DNA of 64,000 nt from Rebecca billardiae RCC1528 (taxonomy: Eukaryota; Protista; Haptophyta), in contig OZ251241.1 in assembly GCA_965240325.2 (NCBI GenBank), positions 682,001 to 746,000 on the forward strand, in the 5' to 3' direction. The notes below the pieces were generated by a model, which searched no databases, was not told the DNA's origin, and worked only from the letters and a program-made list of their open reading frames with translations. A program made the translations under genes and the position numbers. Below are positions 47,836-60,129 of the stretch, one piece after another; within the stretch, counting starts at the first letter, position 1; each line of letters begins with the position of its first letter.

Positions 47836-48271
47836 ATGAACGGAAGAAGCTGCTGCCACCGAGTGCGCCGCCGGGCCCAGCCCCAGGCTGCAGCCTCCTG
47901 CTGGCCTGTCTCCCGCGACGAGCGGTCGGCCCGGTCCCGGCCCCGCCGCTTTATTGATAATATATATATATATATTATAAGATATGGCGGGCCGTTATAT
48001 TATTATTCAGGAATATTCAGCTAGCAGTAGGGCAGTCCGTCAAGTGTCTTTTAAAAATCATAGAATTAGTATGTGGCCCCTCGATGATGAATAAGAATAA
48101 TAATATATATAAGCTATATATATATATATATTAATATATATATATAGTCAGTAGAGATCAGTCTGACCATCACGGCTACCACTACCAGTAGTCTCCGGCC
48201 GAGTTCTTAGCCGTTCGGTATAGCCCGAGAGTGCCTACGCGCGCGGAGTCTCAGTTTATTCTGCGCGCTTC

Positions 48272-48789
48272 AAATATATAAATATATAAATATATAAATA
48301 TATAAATATATAAATATATAAATATATAAATATATAAATATATAAATATATAAATATATAAATATATAAATATATAAATATATAAATATATAAATATATA
48401 AATATATAAATATATAAATATATAAATATATAAATATATAAATATATAAATATATAAATATATAAATATATTTATATAAATATATAAATATATAAATATA
48501 TAAATATATAAATATATTTATATATAAATATATAAATATATAAATATATAAATATATAAATATATAAATATATAAATATATAAATATATAAATATATAAA
48601 TATATAAATATATAAATATATAACTATATAAATATATAAATATATAAATATATAAATATATATAAATAAATATATAAATAAATATATAAATAAATATATA
48701 AATAAATATATAAATATATATATATAAATATATAAATATATAAATATATAAATATATAAATGTATAAATATATATAAATATATATATAA

Positions 48790-48867
<78 letters not shown>

Positions 48868-48923
48868 TTATATATTTATATATATTTATATATTTATATA
48901 TTTATATATTTATATATATATAT
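48272..48923. repeat. (ATATATAA)n satellite, then (TA)n, then reverse-complement units
   Basis: Direct reading. Confidence 0.97.
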
Positions 48924-51563
48924 AAGCAGGCGCGGTATACCGGACTGGCGGTAGTACGCCCGCTGCGCCGCGCAGGCTCTGCAGCGTGGAGCATCATGAT
49001 CGCAGAGGGGGCAGGCATCGCTGAATGCAGCCCCCGACTGGAATCGCACACGGAGAACAAGGTCGCCAACCGGCGGAGCCGCGATCAGATGACAGCACTC
49101 AATAAGGCACGACAGCTCAAGGGGCATTCGCACCGGCGCGGCACCGCGGTACAACGACGTGCCTCCTCGCGCCCAACCGCGAGGCGCGGTTGTTCACCAG
49201 AAAAATTATTATCATCGTCAGATTATTACATGAGATGATGGGCAGCTTGACGAATCTTCGCGATCGCGTCGAAAATGTGGATTCGTCGCGCGATGCCGCG
49301 ATCGATTGTCTGATGACTCATCATGATTCTGTGCATCTGCTATTAATTAACGACACAGATAGGACGACGCAGGTCTCCTGATTCGTCGGCGGCAGTGCTG
49401 CTTCAACAAGAGCAGCGTCGCCGGCGACCGGCACCGCGAAAAAAAAGCCTAGGCCGATTTAAGCCAGTGCTTATTACAGTTTACTAAGAATCAGAGACGT
49501 CGCACACAGCTCAGGCAGGCGAGATTGACGCCCGCCAACTGTCACCGCCCATGAAGCCGTCGCCGATGGTAGCGCCACAGTCATCGGCCTGATCGGCCTG
49601 GGCTGCGATAAGCCCCGCGCGAGCTTATCGCAGCCTGGGCTGGGATAAGCGCTTATCGCAGCCTGGGGCTCGCAAGCGCACGTTGCGCGCCCGCCCGCCC
49701 GCTCCATGGCTGCACGGCGTGCTGTGTCTTCGGCGCCCACGCGAGAAGTGAAGTGCGCAAAGCCTGGTGATGCACGCCGCTCTCCACCCAGCCTTTCCTC
49801 CCGGCCCGGCCCGCCCGCCCTCGCCTGCATCGGATGCCTTGCTCGCGCATGCAACCGCCTCAGCCAACACCGTTGTTCCACCATCGACGGTCGCTGGTAG
49901 GTCGTGTACTGCGTTATCGCACGCAGGTGGCCACGGCCCGTGCGCAACGTCCACCGCGTGCCGATTTCATTGCACCGCGTTCAAACTGCCTGTCTGCAGG
50001 CGGCGAGATGCCACTACAGCCGTGCGCGCGCGCCCGGCTTGGCTTTCTAATATCCTTATTGGCGGTATCGCTCGATGTTGGATCAGCCAATCGCCGCGAT
50101 CCCGTCAGATCGGAGCGATCCTGGCGCGCGGCGCACTGCTCTGTGCGGAGCAGGTCGCTAGTGAAGTCCTCCCTTGGCGGCTGGTGCACGACCGAGCCCG
50201 GACCATCGGCTGACGGCCGCGGAGTGCGGCTCTCGGCGTCTGAAGTGTGGCACTTTGGCAGAGGAAGTGTCGACGGTCGTGGCACCGCGGCTGGTGTGCC
50301 CGCCAGCGCCGGCGCGCCCGCAGTTGTCGGCGCGTACGGCAAGCACGCCAAGGCTGCTACGGGGCCCGGCCGCGGCTGGCGCGCTCGGCGAGCACGCCAA
50401 GGTCGCCGCGCCGCGCGCGCGGTGGTCCGCGCGCACGCAGCGGCTGGCGCGCGCGCAGCGGCCCGGCGCGCGCGCCGCGGCCGGCGCGCGCGTCGCGGCC
50501 AACAAGCGTGCCACTGCCGACCAGCGTGCCGCAGTCGATCACGCGCCGCGGCCGACTAGCGGTCGGCGCCAGGAGGGCCAGGGGCATGTCAGACTCGACT
50601 CCGCCGCGTCGCGCGCGGCCAAGCGCGCGCTCTGCGCTAGGGACGCGCGACGCGAGGCGGGCGCTCGCGCACGCACGCGGCCATCCCGACCAGCGCCAAA
50701 CGGGCGACGCCAGCGAGGGAGGCGATATCGTCAGACGAGAGCACCTCCCTCCGAACGAGAGCACCTCCCAGTGGGAGGGGCGTGATCACGAGTACGAGTT
50801 CGGCCGTGCTCACTCTGTCCGCGCCGGCCGGCGGCGCACGGACAGATACACGGATCACGTCGGCTGGCAGCCAGCCGCTCTCTGACCAGGTCAGAAGAGA
50901 TGTCAGCAGTCAGCTGTATCTGCCACTCATTGCCAGCGCCAGAAACAGCCCCTGCGGCGCTCCCTCGCCCCGCGCGCGCGTCGCGCGCGCGCGTGGGGCT
51001 GCGGGGCGCCGTTCTGAGCACGCGCGTGTCTGGCCGTTGCGCAAATCGCAACGCGGCCGTATCCGGGTCGGTGGCCCGGGCGCGCGCGATGGCTCTTGGG
51101 GTTCTGCGCACGCCCCCACGCGCGGCGCCCGCCTGGCCGCCCTCGGCCGTGCCATGCGCGCGCACCCCCGCGAGGGTGCGCGGCCGCCCCGCGCGCGCAC
51201 GCCACACGCGCGAGCGGGCGGGCGGGCGAGGGAGTGCAGCTGCTTGGCCGCGGAGGCGCGGAGCAGGGCCACACGTGACCGGTGCGTGCAGGCGCGCACC
51301 TCGCCGCCGCCTCCTCGCACGCGCCGGGGCGCTGCGCCGCCCTCCGCCGAGGGACGTCGGCTGCGGGGCCGCATCCCGGCCGACGCCATCGCGAGGCTCA
51401 GATCTCGCGAAGCGTTCACTTGACCCGGAAGCACTGGTCAGGACTCAGTCCACCCGACCGGGACGGCCAGATCCGCGGCCAGCCTGGCGGGTCGCTCGGC
51501 CGCACCCCCGTGCAGCCCGAGGCCGTCTCTGCGCGCCGCGCTGCGTCATTCTCCGCGGCCGCC

Positions 51564-55462: not shown

Positions 55463-55852
55463 TCACGCGAAGACGGGGGGCTCAGCGGTCGGGTCGAGCT
55501 CGCCCACCGCGACGCGCAGCGCGGCTGCTTCGCGCCGCAGCTCCTTCACGACGGCGGCGAGTGCCTCCGGGTTGACGCCCTGCTCGCAGAGGGCGACGAG
55601 GATGGCGAGCGTCTCCTTGTCCAGGCCGGTCTCGAGCAGCTGCGAGATCTCGAAGAGGGCTGCGAGCGCGGCACGGGCCGGCGGGCCGCGCCGAGGCGCG
55701 CGCACGACGCGTCTCGTGAGCGCGCATGCGCCGCTCGCGGCGCGCGGCGATGGCACAGACGGTACGCGCGATGACATGACGCGGGTCGCGCTGCGCGCAC
55801 TGTCCAGCGTGTCCCCGCTCCCCTCGTCTGTGTCCGCCGCGACGTGCGCCAT
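55463..55852 (-). CDS. MZT1: Mitotic-spindle organizing protein 1 (MOZART1/GIP); intron 55660-55800
   Basis: [48 protein letters not shown]. Confidence 0.95.
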
Positions 55853-56004
55853 CGCGGCTTGAGGGCAAGGCGCGCTTGCCCAAGGCCGAGGCCACCGCCC
55901 ACCGGTCGCTCGTGTCGCCCGGACTCGACAGCGCCCCATCAGCAGGAGTGGCTCGGCACTCTCTCATCAGTGTTTTTCGTCAGGTTCGCGAGTAGCCGCC
56001 TGAT

Positions 56005-59000
56005 GAGTCCACTCCACCGAAATCGCGGGTTGGCCCGGCCTCCTCGCTCTCCTACGGCCCGGGGGCTTGTCAGACAAACCCACGGGGGCGGCGGAATGTC
56101 CGGAAAGCGCAGATCACCAACCGGACGGCCGGCTCCCCACGGGGAGCCGGCCGTCCGGTGCGCAGCAAATAGGCGTCGCGCGTGCGCGGACGCCGGACGC
56201 CAGCCCTAACGGCGGGATGGTGTTCACCGGGCGACGCCCTTGGCGACGCGAGGGCCCGCCTGCGCCACGCGCCCAGGGCCGCATACGAGCTTGACAGCCG
56301 TGCGCGGGCGCCTCGTGGTGGCGAGAAGACCCGATGGCAGCATTTGCGCCGTCTTGTCCACGCCCTCGTCACCCTTTATGCGCGCAAAGACCTGCTAACT
56401 GGCACGCGCAGCTCTAGAATTGAAGGCCTGCCCGACGAGCATGATGGTCGGCACGCGTGCGCCCCTGAGGTATTCAATGGTCGGGTACTTTCACTTCTGT
56501 GCGAGGGGCCTGAGAGTACTGAGCATGAACGCTGCGCCTTGAGCCATGCTGGCATCAGTCAGACCGCACGCATGTATGTGAGACGGGCCAGTCGGAGAAT
56601 CGTCATCGGGCCGCCGCCGCCAGTTAGTCAGCCTTGCTTCTTCTCCACGCATAGCCTCGAGCAACAACTAGGCTAGCACATCTGTTGCGTCGACTTCCGA
56701 CACCTTGCGGTCTGCTTCGTCGCTCATGCCTCTATACCTCCCTACGAATGGCGGCATGCCCGGCTGGCGCGAGCCCCGGCCCGCCGTGAACGGTGCGCAC
56801 GCCGTCGCGGCGACCGGCCGACTCACAGCTGACCGGCTCCAGATCGGACCACACCGCGCCATGAGCGTGGGTGCACACGATTGTGCAGGCGATCGCACAC
56901 ATGTCGAGCGCACTGTCTACGGCCAGCAGGTGCCCAAGAACGCACTGTGCTGCAACATGTGCATTTGAGTTCGAACAATCTGCTCACCAAGCAACAAAAC
57001 CGCTCATCTCCGCTGAGTACGCGAGGGCATCGTCGCGCGCTGGGGCTCGTCGATGCGCCAACACCTAGGCCCATCGGGCAGAGGCCGTGGCTCGTCTTAA
57101 TTGGGCCTCTGGCACACGCGCGCGCGCGCTCTCGCGCGGCGGGCCGCCTCCTGGACGCGTCGCGCGGAAAGTAGCCGGGCCCTGCGCGCGGCGAGGGCGG
57201 CGAGGGCGGGCGGGAGCGCGCGCGATTGAGCCCCATAGGTGTCTTGAGCCGCGCCGACCTCGCGCGCGCACCCGCAGCGGCCGTGGGTGCGCGTCCGAGC
57301 GCGCCGCGTGAGGCCGCCATCGCGCCGTGCGCGCGCGGGGCCGTCCCCCGTGGGTTTGTCTGACAAGCCGGGGGGGGGCCGGGCCGCTTGCGCGGCGGCC
57401 CGGCCTCCGTGCATGCACGCGGCGTGTGCGGAGATCATACGGCGATCGCCCGAGATCATAAGTCGCGTGCGCGGGCCGCCCTACCGCGGGGTGCGCGCGC
57501 GTGTTCGCACCCTGGCCGCCCGCATCGCCCGCGGCAGGCCGTCGCGCGCGCTCGCGGGCGGGCGCCAGGGTGCCCGGAACCCGGTCTCGCCGTCGGTTCG
57601 CGCCCGCGCGCCTTCCGCCGCCGCCGCGGCCCGCCGGAACGCCCGCAACGCGCTGCCTGTATGGCCCGGTGAAAGCGCGGCCGCGTGGCGAGGCGAGGAC
57701 GGCGATGTCAGGGCGGCGCGCGTGCGTGTGACGTGTCTCGTGCGGTACTCTCGTCGACCGACCAGCGTCACGCGCGCCGCGGCTCCCGTTGCAACCACGC
57801 GCCGCGCGCGTGCCGCTCGGCGCGGCTGAGCCACTGCTCTGACGGCTCGTCGGTCAGCGCGGCCAAGTCGCACCCGCGACGGGCAGACGAGGCCGCGCGC
57901 CGGCTCCACGGGCGCAGGACTACACGCGCTATCCTCCCTCCGCGAGGGGTAGGCGGCTGCGCCTCGAGACTGCCGCCGCGGCCGTGCCGCGCCCGAGCGT
58001 GTGATCGGACGGCACTGACCGCGGGCACGTGCCAGCGGTGGGGCGCGGCGCGCGGCGCGGCGCGTCGAGCGCAGTCACGCGGACGGCACGGCGACGATCC
58101 GACGCACTCCTCGGGTAAGAGTTCGGCCCGTAGCGCTTGCTCCGCGTTGCGTGTCCCTGCAGCACGAAGTCAGTTACGCACGCGTCGCAAATGACTTGCT
58201 CTCTTGACTCCAGCCTGCAGCCCAGCACCTGTAAGGCGCGCGGGCTTGCTGTGACACAGACTGGCAGCCAACCAGCTCACGGGCCAACACGACTTTCAGC
58301 CTAGCGATGCGTGGAATCGCGTGCTCATCTGTAGAGCTACCAACACTCGAGAGACGATGCATGTTGTTAGTCGCTGTGCCGTCCTAATGACTCCACTCGA
58401 CGAGCAGCGCCGCGCGCCGCGGCCCACTGGCACTGCGCTGGCATCTATTGTTCAGTACGTGGGTCCAGATGAAGTTTGAAGGGAAGCCATGGTGGGCGTG
58501 AAAGCCCGTCCCACCGCGCGCCACAGCCGGGTCACCGGGGCGTGGCGTAGGCAGGTCGGCGTGACCATACGAGCGCGTGGGCATGAGTGACAACTTCCCT
58601 TCTTCAAACTTTTCGACCACTCTCACGTCCACGTCCACGTCCTCGGGCTCGTGCGACCGGCGCGCGTGAAGCTGAGCAGCATGGGAAGGATGGGCAAGTA
58701 GGGGCCAGGGTCACCCTTCTGAATGCTGAACTCTCGGGCATGTCGTGCGAGGATGCCGAACTGTCGCTGTTCCGTCTCACTCCACACGCCTTGCGTCTGA
58801 CGGGCAAGGTTGGCTGCGCAGTAGTCGTGCGACTGCGTCAGACAGCTGCCGCTGAGCGATGCTGCGACTACGTGTGTCGCGCCTGACATTTGACAACAGC
58901 GCGGCCATCATCGACGAACATGCTGGCTAGCGCTGGGCTGATCAGGGCTGATAGCAACCTGCTCTGGGACTACGCCACGCGGTTCGGCGACCACGCCACC

Positions 59001-60011
59001 GCTCGATGCCCATCCGGAGGCATGGACGTGCCGCACTACCTGGCCAGCCATCGCCATGAGGTGGCCGTAGTGCTAAGTGTGTAGCCCGCTGTGCCGTCCG
59101 ATCACACGCCCGGGCGCGGCACGGCCGCGGCGGCAGTCTCGAGGCGCAGCCGCCTACCCCTCGCAGAAGGAGGCTAGCGCGTGCAGGCATGCGCCCGAAG
59201 AACGCGGCCTCGTCTGCCCGTCACGGGTCGTCGCCGTGCCGTCCGCGTGACTGCGCTCGACGCGCCGCGCCGCGCGCCGCGCCCCACCGCTGGCACGTGC
59301 CCGCGGTCAGTGCCGTCCGATCACACGCTCGGGCGCGGCACGGCCGCGGCGGCAGTCTCGAGGCGCAGCCGCCTACCCCTCGCGGAGGGAGGATAGCGCG
59401 TGTAGTCCTGCGCCCGTGGAGCCGGCGCGCGGCCTCGTCTGCCCGTCGCGGGTGCGACTTGGCCGCGCTGACCGACGAGCCGTCAGAGCAGTGGCTCAGC
59501 CGCGCCGAGCGGCACGCGCGCGGCGCGTGGTTGCAACGGGAGCCGCGGCGCGCGTGACGCTGGTCGGTCGACGAGAGTACCGCACGAGACACGTCACACG
59601 CACGCGCGCCGCCCTGACATCGCCGTCCTCGCCTCGCCACGCGGCCGCGCTTTCACCGGGCCATACAGGCAGCGCGTTGCGGGCGTTCCGGCGGGCCGCG
59701 GCGGCGGCGGAAGGCGCGCGGGCGCGAACCGACGGCGAGACCGGGTTCCGGGCACCCTGGCGCCCGCCCGCGAGCGCGCGCGACGGCCTGCCGCGGGCGA
59801 TGCGGGCGGCCAGGGTGCGAACACGCGCGCGCACCCCGCGGTAGGGCGGCCCGCGCACGCGACTTATGATCTCGGGCGATCGCCGTATGATCTCCGCACA
59901 CGCCGCGTGCATGCACGGAGGCCGGGCCGCCGCGCAAGCGGCCCGGCCCCCCCCCGGGCCGTAGGAGAGCGAGGAGGCCGGGCCAACCCGCGATTTCGGT
60001 GGAGTGGACTC
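56005..60011. mobile_element. Foldback/MULE-like element with ~788-bp TIRs (left arm 56005-56060 + 57370-58101; right arm 59224-60011)
   Basis: Arms are reverse complements without indels (mirror ORFs in track); termini GAGTCCACTCC; imperfect flanking duplication CGCCTGAT / CGCCTGTA. Confidence 0.85.
56064..57369. mobile_element. Nested non-autonomous TIR element (PIF/Harbinger-like by 3-bp TSD)
   Basis: Perfect 25-bp TIR GGCTTGTCAGACAAACCCACGGGGG; comparison with the empty site in the right arm shows 3 extra G (TSD GGG). Confidence 0.85.
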
Positions 60012-60129
60012 CGCCTGTAAAGCGTCGGAAACACGCGGTGCCTGCACAGCCGTCTTCTCCGGTCATGAGTCTGTCGCGAGTGTGGCCGCCAACCTGCCCG
60101 GCTTTCACCGCGCGCCCGATTCTCATCTC

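Follow-up and report, generated by a model that had tools for sequence, protein, structure and literature searches.

Nested non-autonomous TIR transposons upstream of a MOZART1 gene: a foldback element with concerted arms and a later 1.3-kb insertion

Closest described systems

Drosophila FB elements are flanked by 9-bp target site duplications (TSDs), Polinton/Maverick elements combine long terminal inverted repeats (TIRs) and 5-6-bp TSDs with polymerase and integrase genes, and the ends of plant-type hAT and CACTA elements typically carry repeated subterminal motifs in both orientations, YARNG being the usual hAT tip pentamer. In FB and Galileo, long inverted arms constitute most of the element and contain an inner tandem subrepeat of variable copy number, most copies being non-coding and arm length varying by copy and family; Galileo, a member of the P superfamily, has 7-bp TSDs (PMC3573991). 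Transib families show 5-bp TSDs at targets such as cCASTGg and ends made of a CAC-led heptamer and a 12/23-spaced, A-rich nonamer, and hAT tips have A at position 2 and an invariant G at position 3 (PMC1131882). A 5-bp TSD is also described for hAT5, an animal lineage (PMC12730594), and Ginger2/TDD tips read TGTNR (PMC2836005).

The foldback here described lies in a window of 64,000 nt (the whole stretch of DNA analysed), and the host genome is that of a very GC-rich eukaryote, its eukaryotic nature being deduced from genome size and from the presence of the MOZART1 gene. The element resembles FB and Galileo in the predominance of its arms, in its tandem subrepeat, in the mostly non-coding nature of its copies and in the variation of arm length by copy and family. 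On the contrary, it shows a 5-bp TSD instead of the 9 or 7 bp of those elements, its tips are unrelated to theirs, it has no known transposase, and its host is a GC-rich protist or alga rather than an insect. The second element, nested in the first, is close to an ordinary non-autonomous TIR transposon (MITE-like or a deletion derivative), with short perfect TIRs, a fixed TSD, many copies of uniform length and no coding content, although at 1.3 kb it is longer than typical MITEs. Its 7-bp TSD at CYNNNGG recalls the P superfamily, as in Galileo (7 bp; PMC3573991), but neither a transposase nor a sequence link was found.

The reading favoured here, with a probability of roughly 0.72, is that two nested non-autonomous class II (TIR) transposons lie upstream of a MOZART1 gene, namely a foldback with concerted arms and, inserted into it later, a 1302-bp element. 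The outer element, of 2698 bp, would be a member of a group of ~80 long-armed elements characterised by a 21-nt GAG...CTC tip, a conserved palindrome situated 52-74 nt in from either end and a 5-bp duplication, and would be moved by cut-and-paste with a transposase supplied in trans, one arm being repeatedly copied onto the other. In a later step, the 1302-bp non-coding element, belonging to a different family (7-bp duplication, CYNNNGG), would have entered the palindrome of the left arm.

Architecture of the locus and order of the insertions

Table 1. Features of the composite element and its surroundings, in positions of the window.
Feature	Position	Strand	Remarks
MOZART1-domain open frame	55463..55939	-	domain at residues 90-135; PF12554, E 2.4e-23, above curated cut-off
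Left junction	55997..56004	.	CGCCT (equal to the 5 nt past the right tip), then extra GAT before the element
Whole composite	56005..60011	.	foldback, 2698 bp once the insert is taken out, with the nested element
Left arm, outer 61 nt	56005..56065	+	21-nt family tip motif at 56005-56025; 100% to 59951-60011
Left 7-bp TSD of the nested element	56059..56065	.	CCGGGGG, arm nt 55-61
Nested non-coding TIR element	56066..57367	+	1302 bp, 23-nt perfect TIRs
Palindrome inside the nested element	56122-56159		17-bp stem
Right 7-bp TSD of the nested element	57368..57374	.	
Left arm, inner 734 nt	57368..58101	+	arm nt 55-788; 100% to 59224-59957
Spacer (loop)	58102..59223	.	1122 bp, non-coding
Degenerate extra part-copy of the arm subrepeat	59091-59228		subrepeat of ~221 bp
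Right arm	59224..60011	-	788 nt, uninterrupted; retains the empty insertion site
Tip-proximal palindrome, right arm	59938..59960	.	arm nt 52-74
Right junction	60012..60016	.	CGCCT immediately against the tip

Two inverted repeats of 734 and 61 nt, both 100% identical and with 7 nt of the right arm in common, delimit the arms of 788 nt (Table 1). Once re-aligned with the insert removed, they matched at 788 of 788 positions with no mismatch and no gap, so the near-perfect and indel-free reverse complementarity reported in the initial annotation is in fact exact, and the spacer, there given as 1.1 kb, measures 1122 bp. Arms account for 2 x 788 of the 2698 nt and contain tandem subrepeats, as is the case for the foldback class, the ~221-bp subrepeat being present in variable copy number (about 1.6 in the window copy, 3.0 in L022). 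The long hairpin may, as put forward in the initial annotation, yield dsRNA/siRNA or cruciform instability. GC content is 63.6% in the spacer versus 77.7% in the arms, and spacer sequence is kept among copies of the same family and differs between families.

Five full copies and a truncated one were located on other contigs, with flanks different from those in the window. Without its insert, the window foldback aligned end to end with the five full copies at 93.7-96.5% identity, and the 26-nt tip was exact at both ends in six copies. Finding the same 2698-bp structure on five other contigs excludes a chance origin and, together with the exactness of the structure, supports the earlier assignment to a foldback-type mobile element. 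An origin of the palindrome in the assembler is conceivable in principle, perfect long palindromes being a recognised type of assembly error, and would nonetheless be exceedingly improbable here considering that (i) more than 20 sampled loci, differing in their flanks and TSDs, show this architecture, (ii) arms in related families measure 440-910 nt, and (iii) an insertion in one arm only is unlike the product of a fold-back chimera. An artefact of this kind was therefore discarded.

Mobility of the foldback would follow from these copies and from their target duplications. The 5-bp TSD was perfect in 20 of 21 sampled elements at other loci, the target being weakly palindromic (c|nGnCg|g), and in four of the other five full copies of the window family, one member of which (L025) showed no TSD at all. 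For the window foldback itself all five duplication bases match, but three extra bases (GAT, 56002-56004) are present at the left junction, which may thus correspond to a 5-bp TSD plus 3 nt of filler. A 6-bp TSD with Polinton-like AG...CT ends was also considered and rejected, the flanks not permitting that register.

As for the insert, its inverted ends were detected by the repeat finder as perfect over 25 nt (56064-56088 and 57345-57369). Two bases on each side belong, however, to the 7-bp target duplication, and the element is consequently 1302 bp long with 23-nt TIRs: the initial description of a TIR element splitting the left arm holds, but not its size of 1306 bp with 25-bp TIRs. The duplicated CCGGGGG occurs once in the right arm, where the site is uninterrupted, as it also is in all five other full copies. 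The right arm indeed preserves the empty target site, fixing the order of events with the foldback inserted first, as had been proposed.

The nested family comprises at least 21 copies with 76-99% identity (22 long matches), and its tips were found 42 times in the genome, against 0 for the control, pairing at about 1.3 kb. Perfect 7-bp TSDs flank eight of nine full copies, with the consensus CYNNNGG, and the single 3.7-kb copy contains another foldback and not a gene. With its perfect TSD and TIRs and only 9 substitutions in 1302 nt relative to its nearest copy, the nested element does look recent, in agreement with the initial proposal.

The locus provides in this way a clean relative timing for two transposon families upstream of a MOZART1 gene, a spindle gene of essential-looking nature, the foldback tip being placed ~300 nt upstream of the segment that encodes the domain. 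Both families are multi-copy and no description of either was found in the literature searched, consistent with the earlier suggestion that they are probably uncatalogued.

Arm identity and the age of the foldback

Variation among the six copies was then compared between arms. Of the 38 variable sites in the arms, 35 are symmetric, the two arms agreeing within each copy; 21 of these symmetric sites are common to two or more copies, and arms cluster by copy and never by side. Identity between the arms of a copy is 98.4-100%, copies differ from each other by 0.4-4%, and the window foldback by 1.8-4% from each of the others. Comparison of these copies shows that the arms of the window foldback family change in concert, and repeated copying from one arm to the other would keep them identical. 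The copying probably proceeds in place, by arm-to-arm gene conversion or templated repair, regeneration of an arm at each transposition appearing the less likely route.

Since the arms evolve in concert, their identity cannot date the insertion and, unlike LTR identity, is no clock. The qualification of the foldback as young, which had been derived from arm identity, is for this reason not sustained, the window copy moreover being 1.8-4% away from every other copy and devoid of a clean TSD. The opposite case would be that of a very young copy, in which each transposition builds the second arm from the first by snap-back or hairpin-templated synthesis and arm identity does measure the time since insertion. 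Such a mechanism would equally predict that every change on an internal branch is symmetric, as observed, and copies of unequal age would be expected to show the 98.4-100% spread in arm identity; some family members are, in addition, almost identical between contigs. Even so, we consider it unlikely, since the window copy combines perfect arms with an imperfect junction and with its distance from all others, and the 1.3-kb element had time to insert. Furthermore, the copy L049 shows 10 arm mismatches next to a perfect TSD, suggesting, within a small sample, that arm and TSD decay are not in step, and we know of no cut-and-paste enzyme that rebuilds an arm. Concerted change by copying in place is thus the preferred explanation for the identity of the arms.

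Recent activity of the wider foldback group is a separate matter: near-identical copies of one of its families (family C), spread across three contigs, show that the group was active very recently.

End signature, coding content and candidate superfamilies

The 21-nt tip motif was detected at 161 sites in the genome versus 0 for the control, ~80 elements carrying it. Paired GAG tips are separated by 1.0-3.3 kb, except for one 7.6-kb composite pair (L041), which consists of two adjacent foldbacks. Arm lengths in the related families are those given above, and two elements with short TIRs (L047 and L048) are one-arm deletion derivatives.

Open reading frames of the spacer, of the nested element and of a 1-kb relative gave no match in Pfam, no Rfam family was detected within the window, and no coherent 3-nt periodicity was observed in arms across families or in the spacer among copies. 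A 140-nt segment with a periodicity p value of 4e-4 was discounted, as it relies on non-independent pairs inside the subrepeat. Both elements are thus non-coding, and a foldback that encodes nothing would have to be moved by a transposase made elsewhere. No transposase or longer partner with foldback tips was found in the 72-Mb assembly, the search covering the paired tips and five unpaired tips of family C, which correspond to truncated arms or to an element with one mismatched tip. Searches of the genome with the exact or near-exact 26-nt tip and with the degenerate 21-nt motif returned short elements only, and viral contigs gave 0 matches to the tip motif. Four matches in metagenome contigs were taken as chance, considering that they lack similarity past 20 nt and an inverted partner. 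Likewise, none of the 42 tips of the nested element is linked to a P-type (THAP-bearing) transposase, and the check for an autonomous partner was in consequence negative for both elements.

Regarding the enzyme that could act on the outer family, one candidate is a RAG1-fold transposase, in which case the family would be a non-autonomous offshoot of the Transib or RAG1-like (CMCT) group. This would agree with the 5-bp TSD and with a target that is GC-rich, palindromic over 7 nt and flanked by c...g, features shared with Transib (PMC1131882). Nonetheless, the foldback tips read GAG...CTC (GAGNCC...) and present neither a CAC-led heptamer nor a 12/23-spaced nonamer, the arms of 440-910 nt contrast with Transib TIRs of tens of bases, and no such transposase was found between or beside the tips covered, all of which renders this origin improbable.

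A divergent hAT-like transposase moving a 5-bp-TSD branch of hAT (hAT5-like) is similarly improbable. The TSD length, A2 and G3 at the tip, and arrays of short subterminal motifs repeated in both orientations are in line with it, but the GAGNC tip agrees with the hAT type at positions 2 and 3 only, bases 1 and 5 being off the usual pattern, and hAT TIRs fall far short of the length of the foldback arms. hAT5 is, besides, reported as an animal lineage, and no hAT transposase linked to the foldback was found: the genome scan with PF05699 gave one single 31-bit match, on contig 17, a short relic with a stop situated away from the tips and with no GAG tip at its locus.

Two further groups were discarded. 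Ginger2/TDD needs TGTNR tips (PMC2836005), while those of the foldback are GAG. A Polinton/Maverick derivative would fit in its long TIRs and 5-bp TSD, but the foldback lacks coding content and its arms were not found in any larger element.

Altogether, the end signature (GAG tips, 5-bp duplication, covarying palindrome and arms of 440-910 nt) appears to fit none of the described superfamilies on all counts, and no description of GAG...CTC ends, or of transposons in Pavlovales, was found in the literature searched. As a tentative proposal, which we regard as unlikely, the long-armed elements with GAG...CTC ends and 5-bp duplications could be the non-autonomous part of an undescribed cut-and-paste superfamily, whose ends would be read through the 21-nt tip and a family-specific palindrome of conserved structure, with arm copying intrinsic to the element and the palindrome offering other transposons a landing pad; the transposase would then lie outside the assembly or on an element whose ends differ beyond recognition. 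Identification of the enzyme would bring Transib or hAT into haptophyte-type algae, or else establish a new group.

The tip-proximal palindrome is a new feature, conserved between families through compensatory changes: among nine family representatives, 8 of its 10 pairs are changed on both sides, a level of covariation reached in 0 of 500 shuffles. Its left-arm copy is the site struck by the nested element, and all four nested insertions seen (4/4) are located at this palindrome. Such a hotspot makes two ideas testable, namely that structure directs the choice of target or that arm-to-arm repair produces a survivorship effect.

Among minor features, contig 11 holds three family C copies of 3011 bp (starts 1119643, 1132593 and 1145543), which a segmental duplication of 12,950 bp multiplied, the lone tip on contig 10 belongs to a degenerate 129-bp mini-element with no clean TSD, and the match on contig 7 is a solo fragment of 134 nt.

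Structure of the foldback and its nested insertion

When the outer element was re-aligned with its insert excised, its arms were complementary at 788 of 788 positions with no gap, around a spacer of 1122 nt, bearing out the near-perfect, indel-free arms and ~1.1-kb spacer described in the initial annotation. The repeat finder returned two perfect inverted pairs (see table), overlapping by 7 nt in the right arm, as well as perfect inverted ends in the DNA splitting the left arm. The heptamer CCGGGGG is directly duplicated at 56059-56065 and 57368-57374 and single in the right arm, confirming that the foldback preceded the nested element. Since this duplication marks the junctions, the nested element spans 56066-57367, with 1302 bp and 23-nt TIRs; a TIR element nested in the left arm had been correctly recognized, the proposed 1306 bp and 25-bp TIRs having included two bases of the duplication at either end.

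The nested-element tip occurs 42 times in the genome versus none in the control, and 22 long genomic matches of uniform length (76-100% identity) were retrieved, with a perfect 7-bp TSD of consensus CYNNNGG in eight of nine full copies. The nested insertion is probably recent, because 9 substitutions in 1302 nt separate it from its closest relative, a copy on contig 5. The one copy of greater length, 3.7 kb on contig 17, is enlarged by another foldback nested inside it, and no autonomous partner was found among the genomic copies. At locus L036, another copy of this 1.3-kb family harbours a 1.09-kb foldback (L036:2080-3164) with ~370-400-nt arms and CAAGGG... tips. Nucleotides 167-509 of the nested element (56232-56574) are ~79% identical to part of a ~640-bp dispersed repeat, present in at least 18 copies with no obvious TIRs (for example L037:4697-5336 and L038:4696-5338). 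A perfect 17-bp-stem palindrome is found at 56122-56159, ~57-96 nt from the left tip of the nested element; tip-proximal palindromes recur among unrelated TIR families in the genome.

No Pfam match was obtained for ORFs of the spacer, the nested element or a 1-kb relative, nor any Rfam match anywhere in the 64-kb window, and neither the arms across families nor the spacer among copies of the outer family displayed coherent three-base periodicity.

Copies, families and classification

Searches for copies covered a genome of 72 Mb in 41 contigs, which by this size and by the MOZART1 gene in the window belongs to a eukaryote. The further copies for which a search had been suggested do exist: five end-to-end ones of the 2698-bp element, spacer included, on contigs 26, 1, 3, 15 and 13 (93.7-96.5% identity), and a truncated one on contig 7. 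The 26-nt tip is exact at both ends in the six full copies, window copy included. Because end-to-end copies lie on other contigs, the outer element is not an assembly artefact.

A second family, with 810-nt arms, shares the 21-nt tip motif GAGNCCNCTNCANNGAAATCG, which at no more than one mismatch is present at 161 sites genome-wide versus 0 for the motif read backwards as a control. Paired tips of these long-armed elements, here the GAG...CTC group, stand 1.0-3.3 kb apart, with no mobilising enzyme found for the group, and unpaired tips were judged from coordinates alone. The arms of 14 further sampled elements measure 440-912 nt and are 98.4-100% identical, except in two one-arm deletion derivatives. 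Among 21 elements sampled at other loci, 20 are flanked by a perfect 5-bp TSD, and reconstruction of the target shows a weak palindrome (c|nGnCg|g). Spacers are kept within each family and unrelated between families, between-family similarity being significant only at the tip and at ~arm nt 117-315 (to 594 in the closest family). Family C is represented on three contigs by copies that are ~100% identical along 3013 nt, indicating that the group was moving very recently.

On contig 11 of the assembly (G000, 1119643-1148553), a tandem segmental duplication has multiplied a family C foldback, of which three 3011-bp copies recur at an exact spacing of 12,950 bp. A 129-bp mini-element on contig 10 (L034:9863-9991) consists solely of two degenerate family A tips, with no clean TSD.

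TSDs of 5 bp are described for Transib (PMC1131882), the hAT5 branch of hAT (PMC12730594) and TDD-4/5 of Ginger2 (PMC2836005). Transib, with its c|NNNNN|g palindromic targets (PMC1131882), matches the outer group in both TSD and target, but its CAC-led heptamer is absent from the ends; Ginger matches in TSD (TDD-4/5), but its ends read TGTNR, unlike the GAG tips; and hAT agrees at A2 and G3 of the tip but not in the remaining pentamer, a hAT dimerisation-domain profile giving a single match in the whole genome, an isolated relic. Long arms and a 5-bp TSD also recall Polinton/Maverick ends, a link discarded since nothing larger in the genome shares the arms and the flanks exclude a 6-bp, AG...CT register. 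Structurally closest are Drosophila FB and Galileo (PMC3573991), although TSD lengths and hosts differ. As no described superfamily fits fully, the outer element is filed as a foldback-type non-autonomous TIR transposon, its superfamily left unassigned.

Concerted evolution of the arms

Within single copies of the outer family the arms differ by 0-2 substitutions, and between copies arms diverge by 0.4-4.1% and spacers by 1.3-3.9%. Alignment of 12 arms yielded 38 gap-free sites that vary, and in 35 cases the two arms match in every copy; at 21 of these 35, each of two states is carried by at least two copies, so that the changes predate copy separation and yet occupied both arms. In addition, the arm tree groups arms by copy or lineage, never by side. 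Thus, a change arising in one arm regularly spreads to its partner. The favoured explanation, also the conventional one, is that the arms correct each other in place, by gene conversion or templated repair; a model in which each transposition regenerates one arm from its partner predicts an identical site pattern, so that the pattern shows the transfer and not its route.

The window copy carries ~nine private changes per arm, symmetric between arms, and is at least 1.8% different from every other copy. Because arms change in concert, their perfection gives no firm age, and the youth of the foldback is not sustained on that ground. In the contig 1 copy (L022:2559-3220), a ~221-bp inner-arm subrepeat has grown to 3.0 copies in one arm, and therefore arm length alters by unequal exchange.

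Tip-proximal palindrome and insertion sites

A palindrome with a 10-bp stem lies ~52-74 nt from each tip of GAG...CTC elements, one 10-12-nt motif being directly repeated to its left and right; the motif varies between families and the arrangement is constant. In a set of nine representatives, 83% of the cells are paired and compensatory changes affect both sides of 8 of the 10 pairs. None of 500 shuffles equalled this covariation, and pairing falls to 28-48% when the partner is slid by 1-3 columns. The palindrome is interpreted as a putative binding site or a structure required for mobility.

Features and coordinates (window positions unless a locus is named)
Feature	Position	Strand	Description
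Inverted pair	57368-58101 / 59224-59957		perfect, 734 nt
Inverted pair	56005-56065 / 59951-60011		perfect, 61 nt
Palindrome, right arm	59938-59960
Palindrome, left arm	around 56056-56065 / 57368-57381		split by nested element
Palindrome, sampled relatives L039-L052	nt 152-174 of each locus
L051 insertion	L051:175-1279		1.1-kb foldback, 409-nt arms, 7-bp TSD; 3' half of palindrome
L042 insertion	~70 nt from right tip		1.0-kb TIR element; 3' half of palindrome
L050 insertion	L050:149-719		0.57-kb TIR element; at nt 48/49
MOZART1-domain gene	55463-55939	-	profile match; upstream region holds 4-kb composite insertion

The nested element of the window copy sits inside the left-arm palindrome, its TSD being arm nt 55-61. 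Every foreign insertion found in sampled GAG-family elements (4/4) maps to the palindrome or its immediate surroundings, 48-75 nt from a tip; four different elements have landed in a stretch of ~28 nt, in hosts 1-3 kb long. The tips of the L051 insert resemble those of the CAAGGG... foldback of L036. This clustering may mark a hotspot for insertion or arise from survivorship: possibly (i) the inserting elements prefer GC-rich palindromes, (ii) an extruded structure is targeted, or (iii) inserts survive only where the outer homology is too short for arm-to-arm repair to erase them.

A clean 5-bp TSD, present in four of the five other full copies of the outer family, is absent in the window copy, whose right tip is abutted by CGCCT (60012-60016) and whose left flank reads CGCCT (55997-56001), then GAT (56002-56004), then the tip; the junction would correspond to a 5-bp TSD, with GAT as a 3-nt filler or a subsequent change. 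The left tip stands ~300 nt upstream of the MOZART1-domain-coding part of the minus-strand frame. Elsewhere in the window, a 2-kb block (48001-50000) has 39% GC, the remainder ranging from 53 to 80%.
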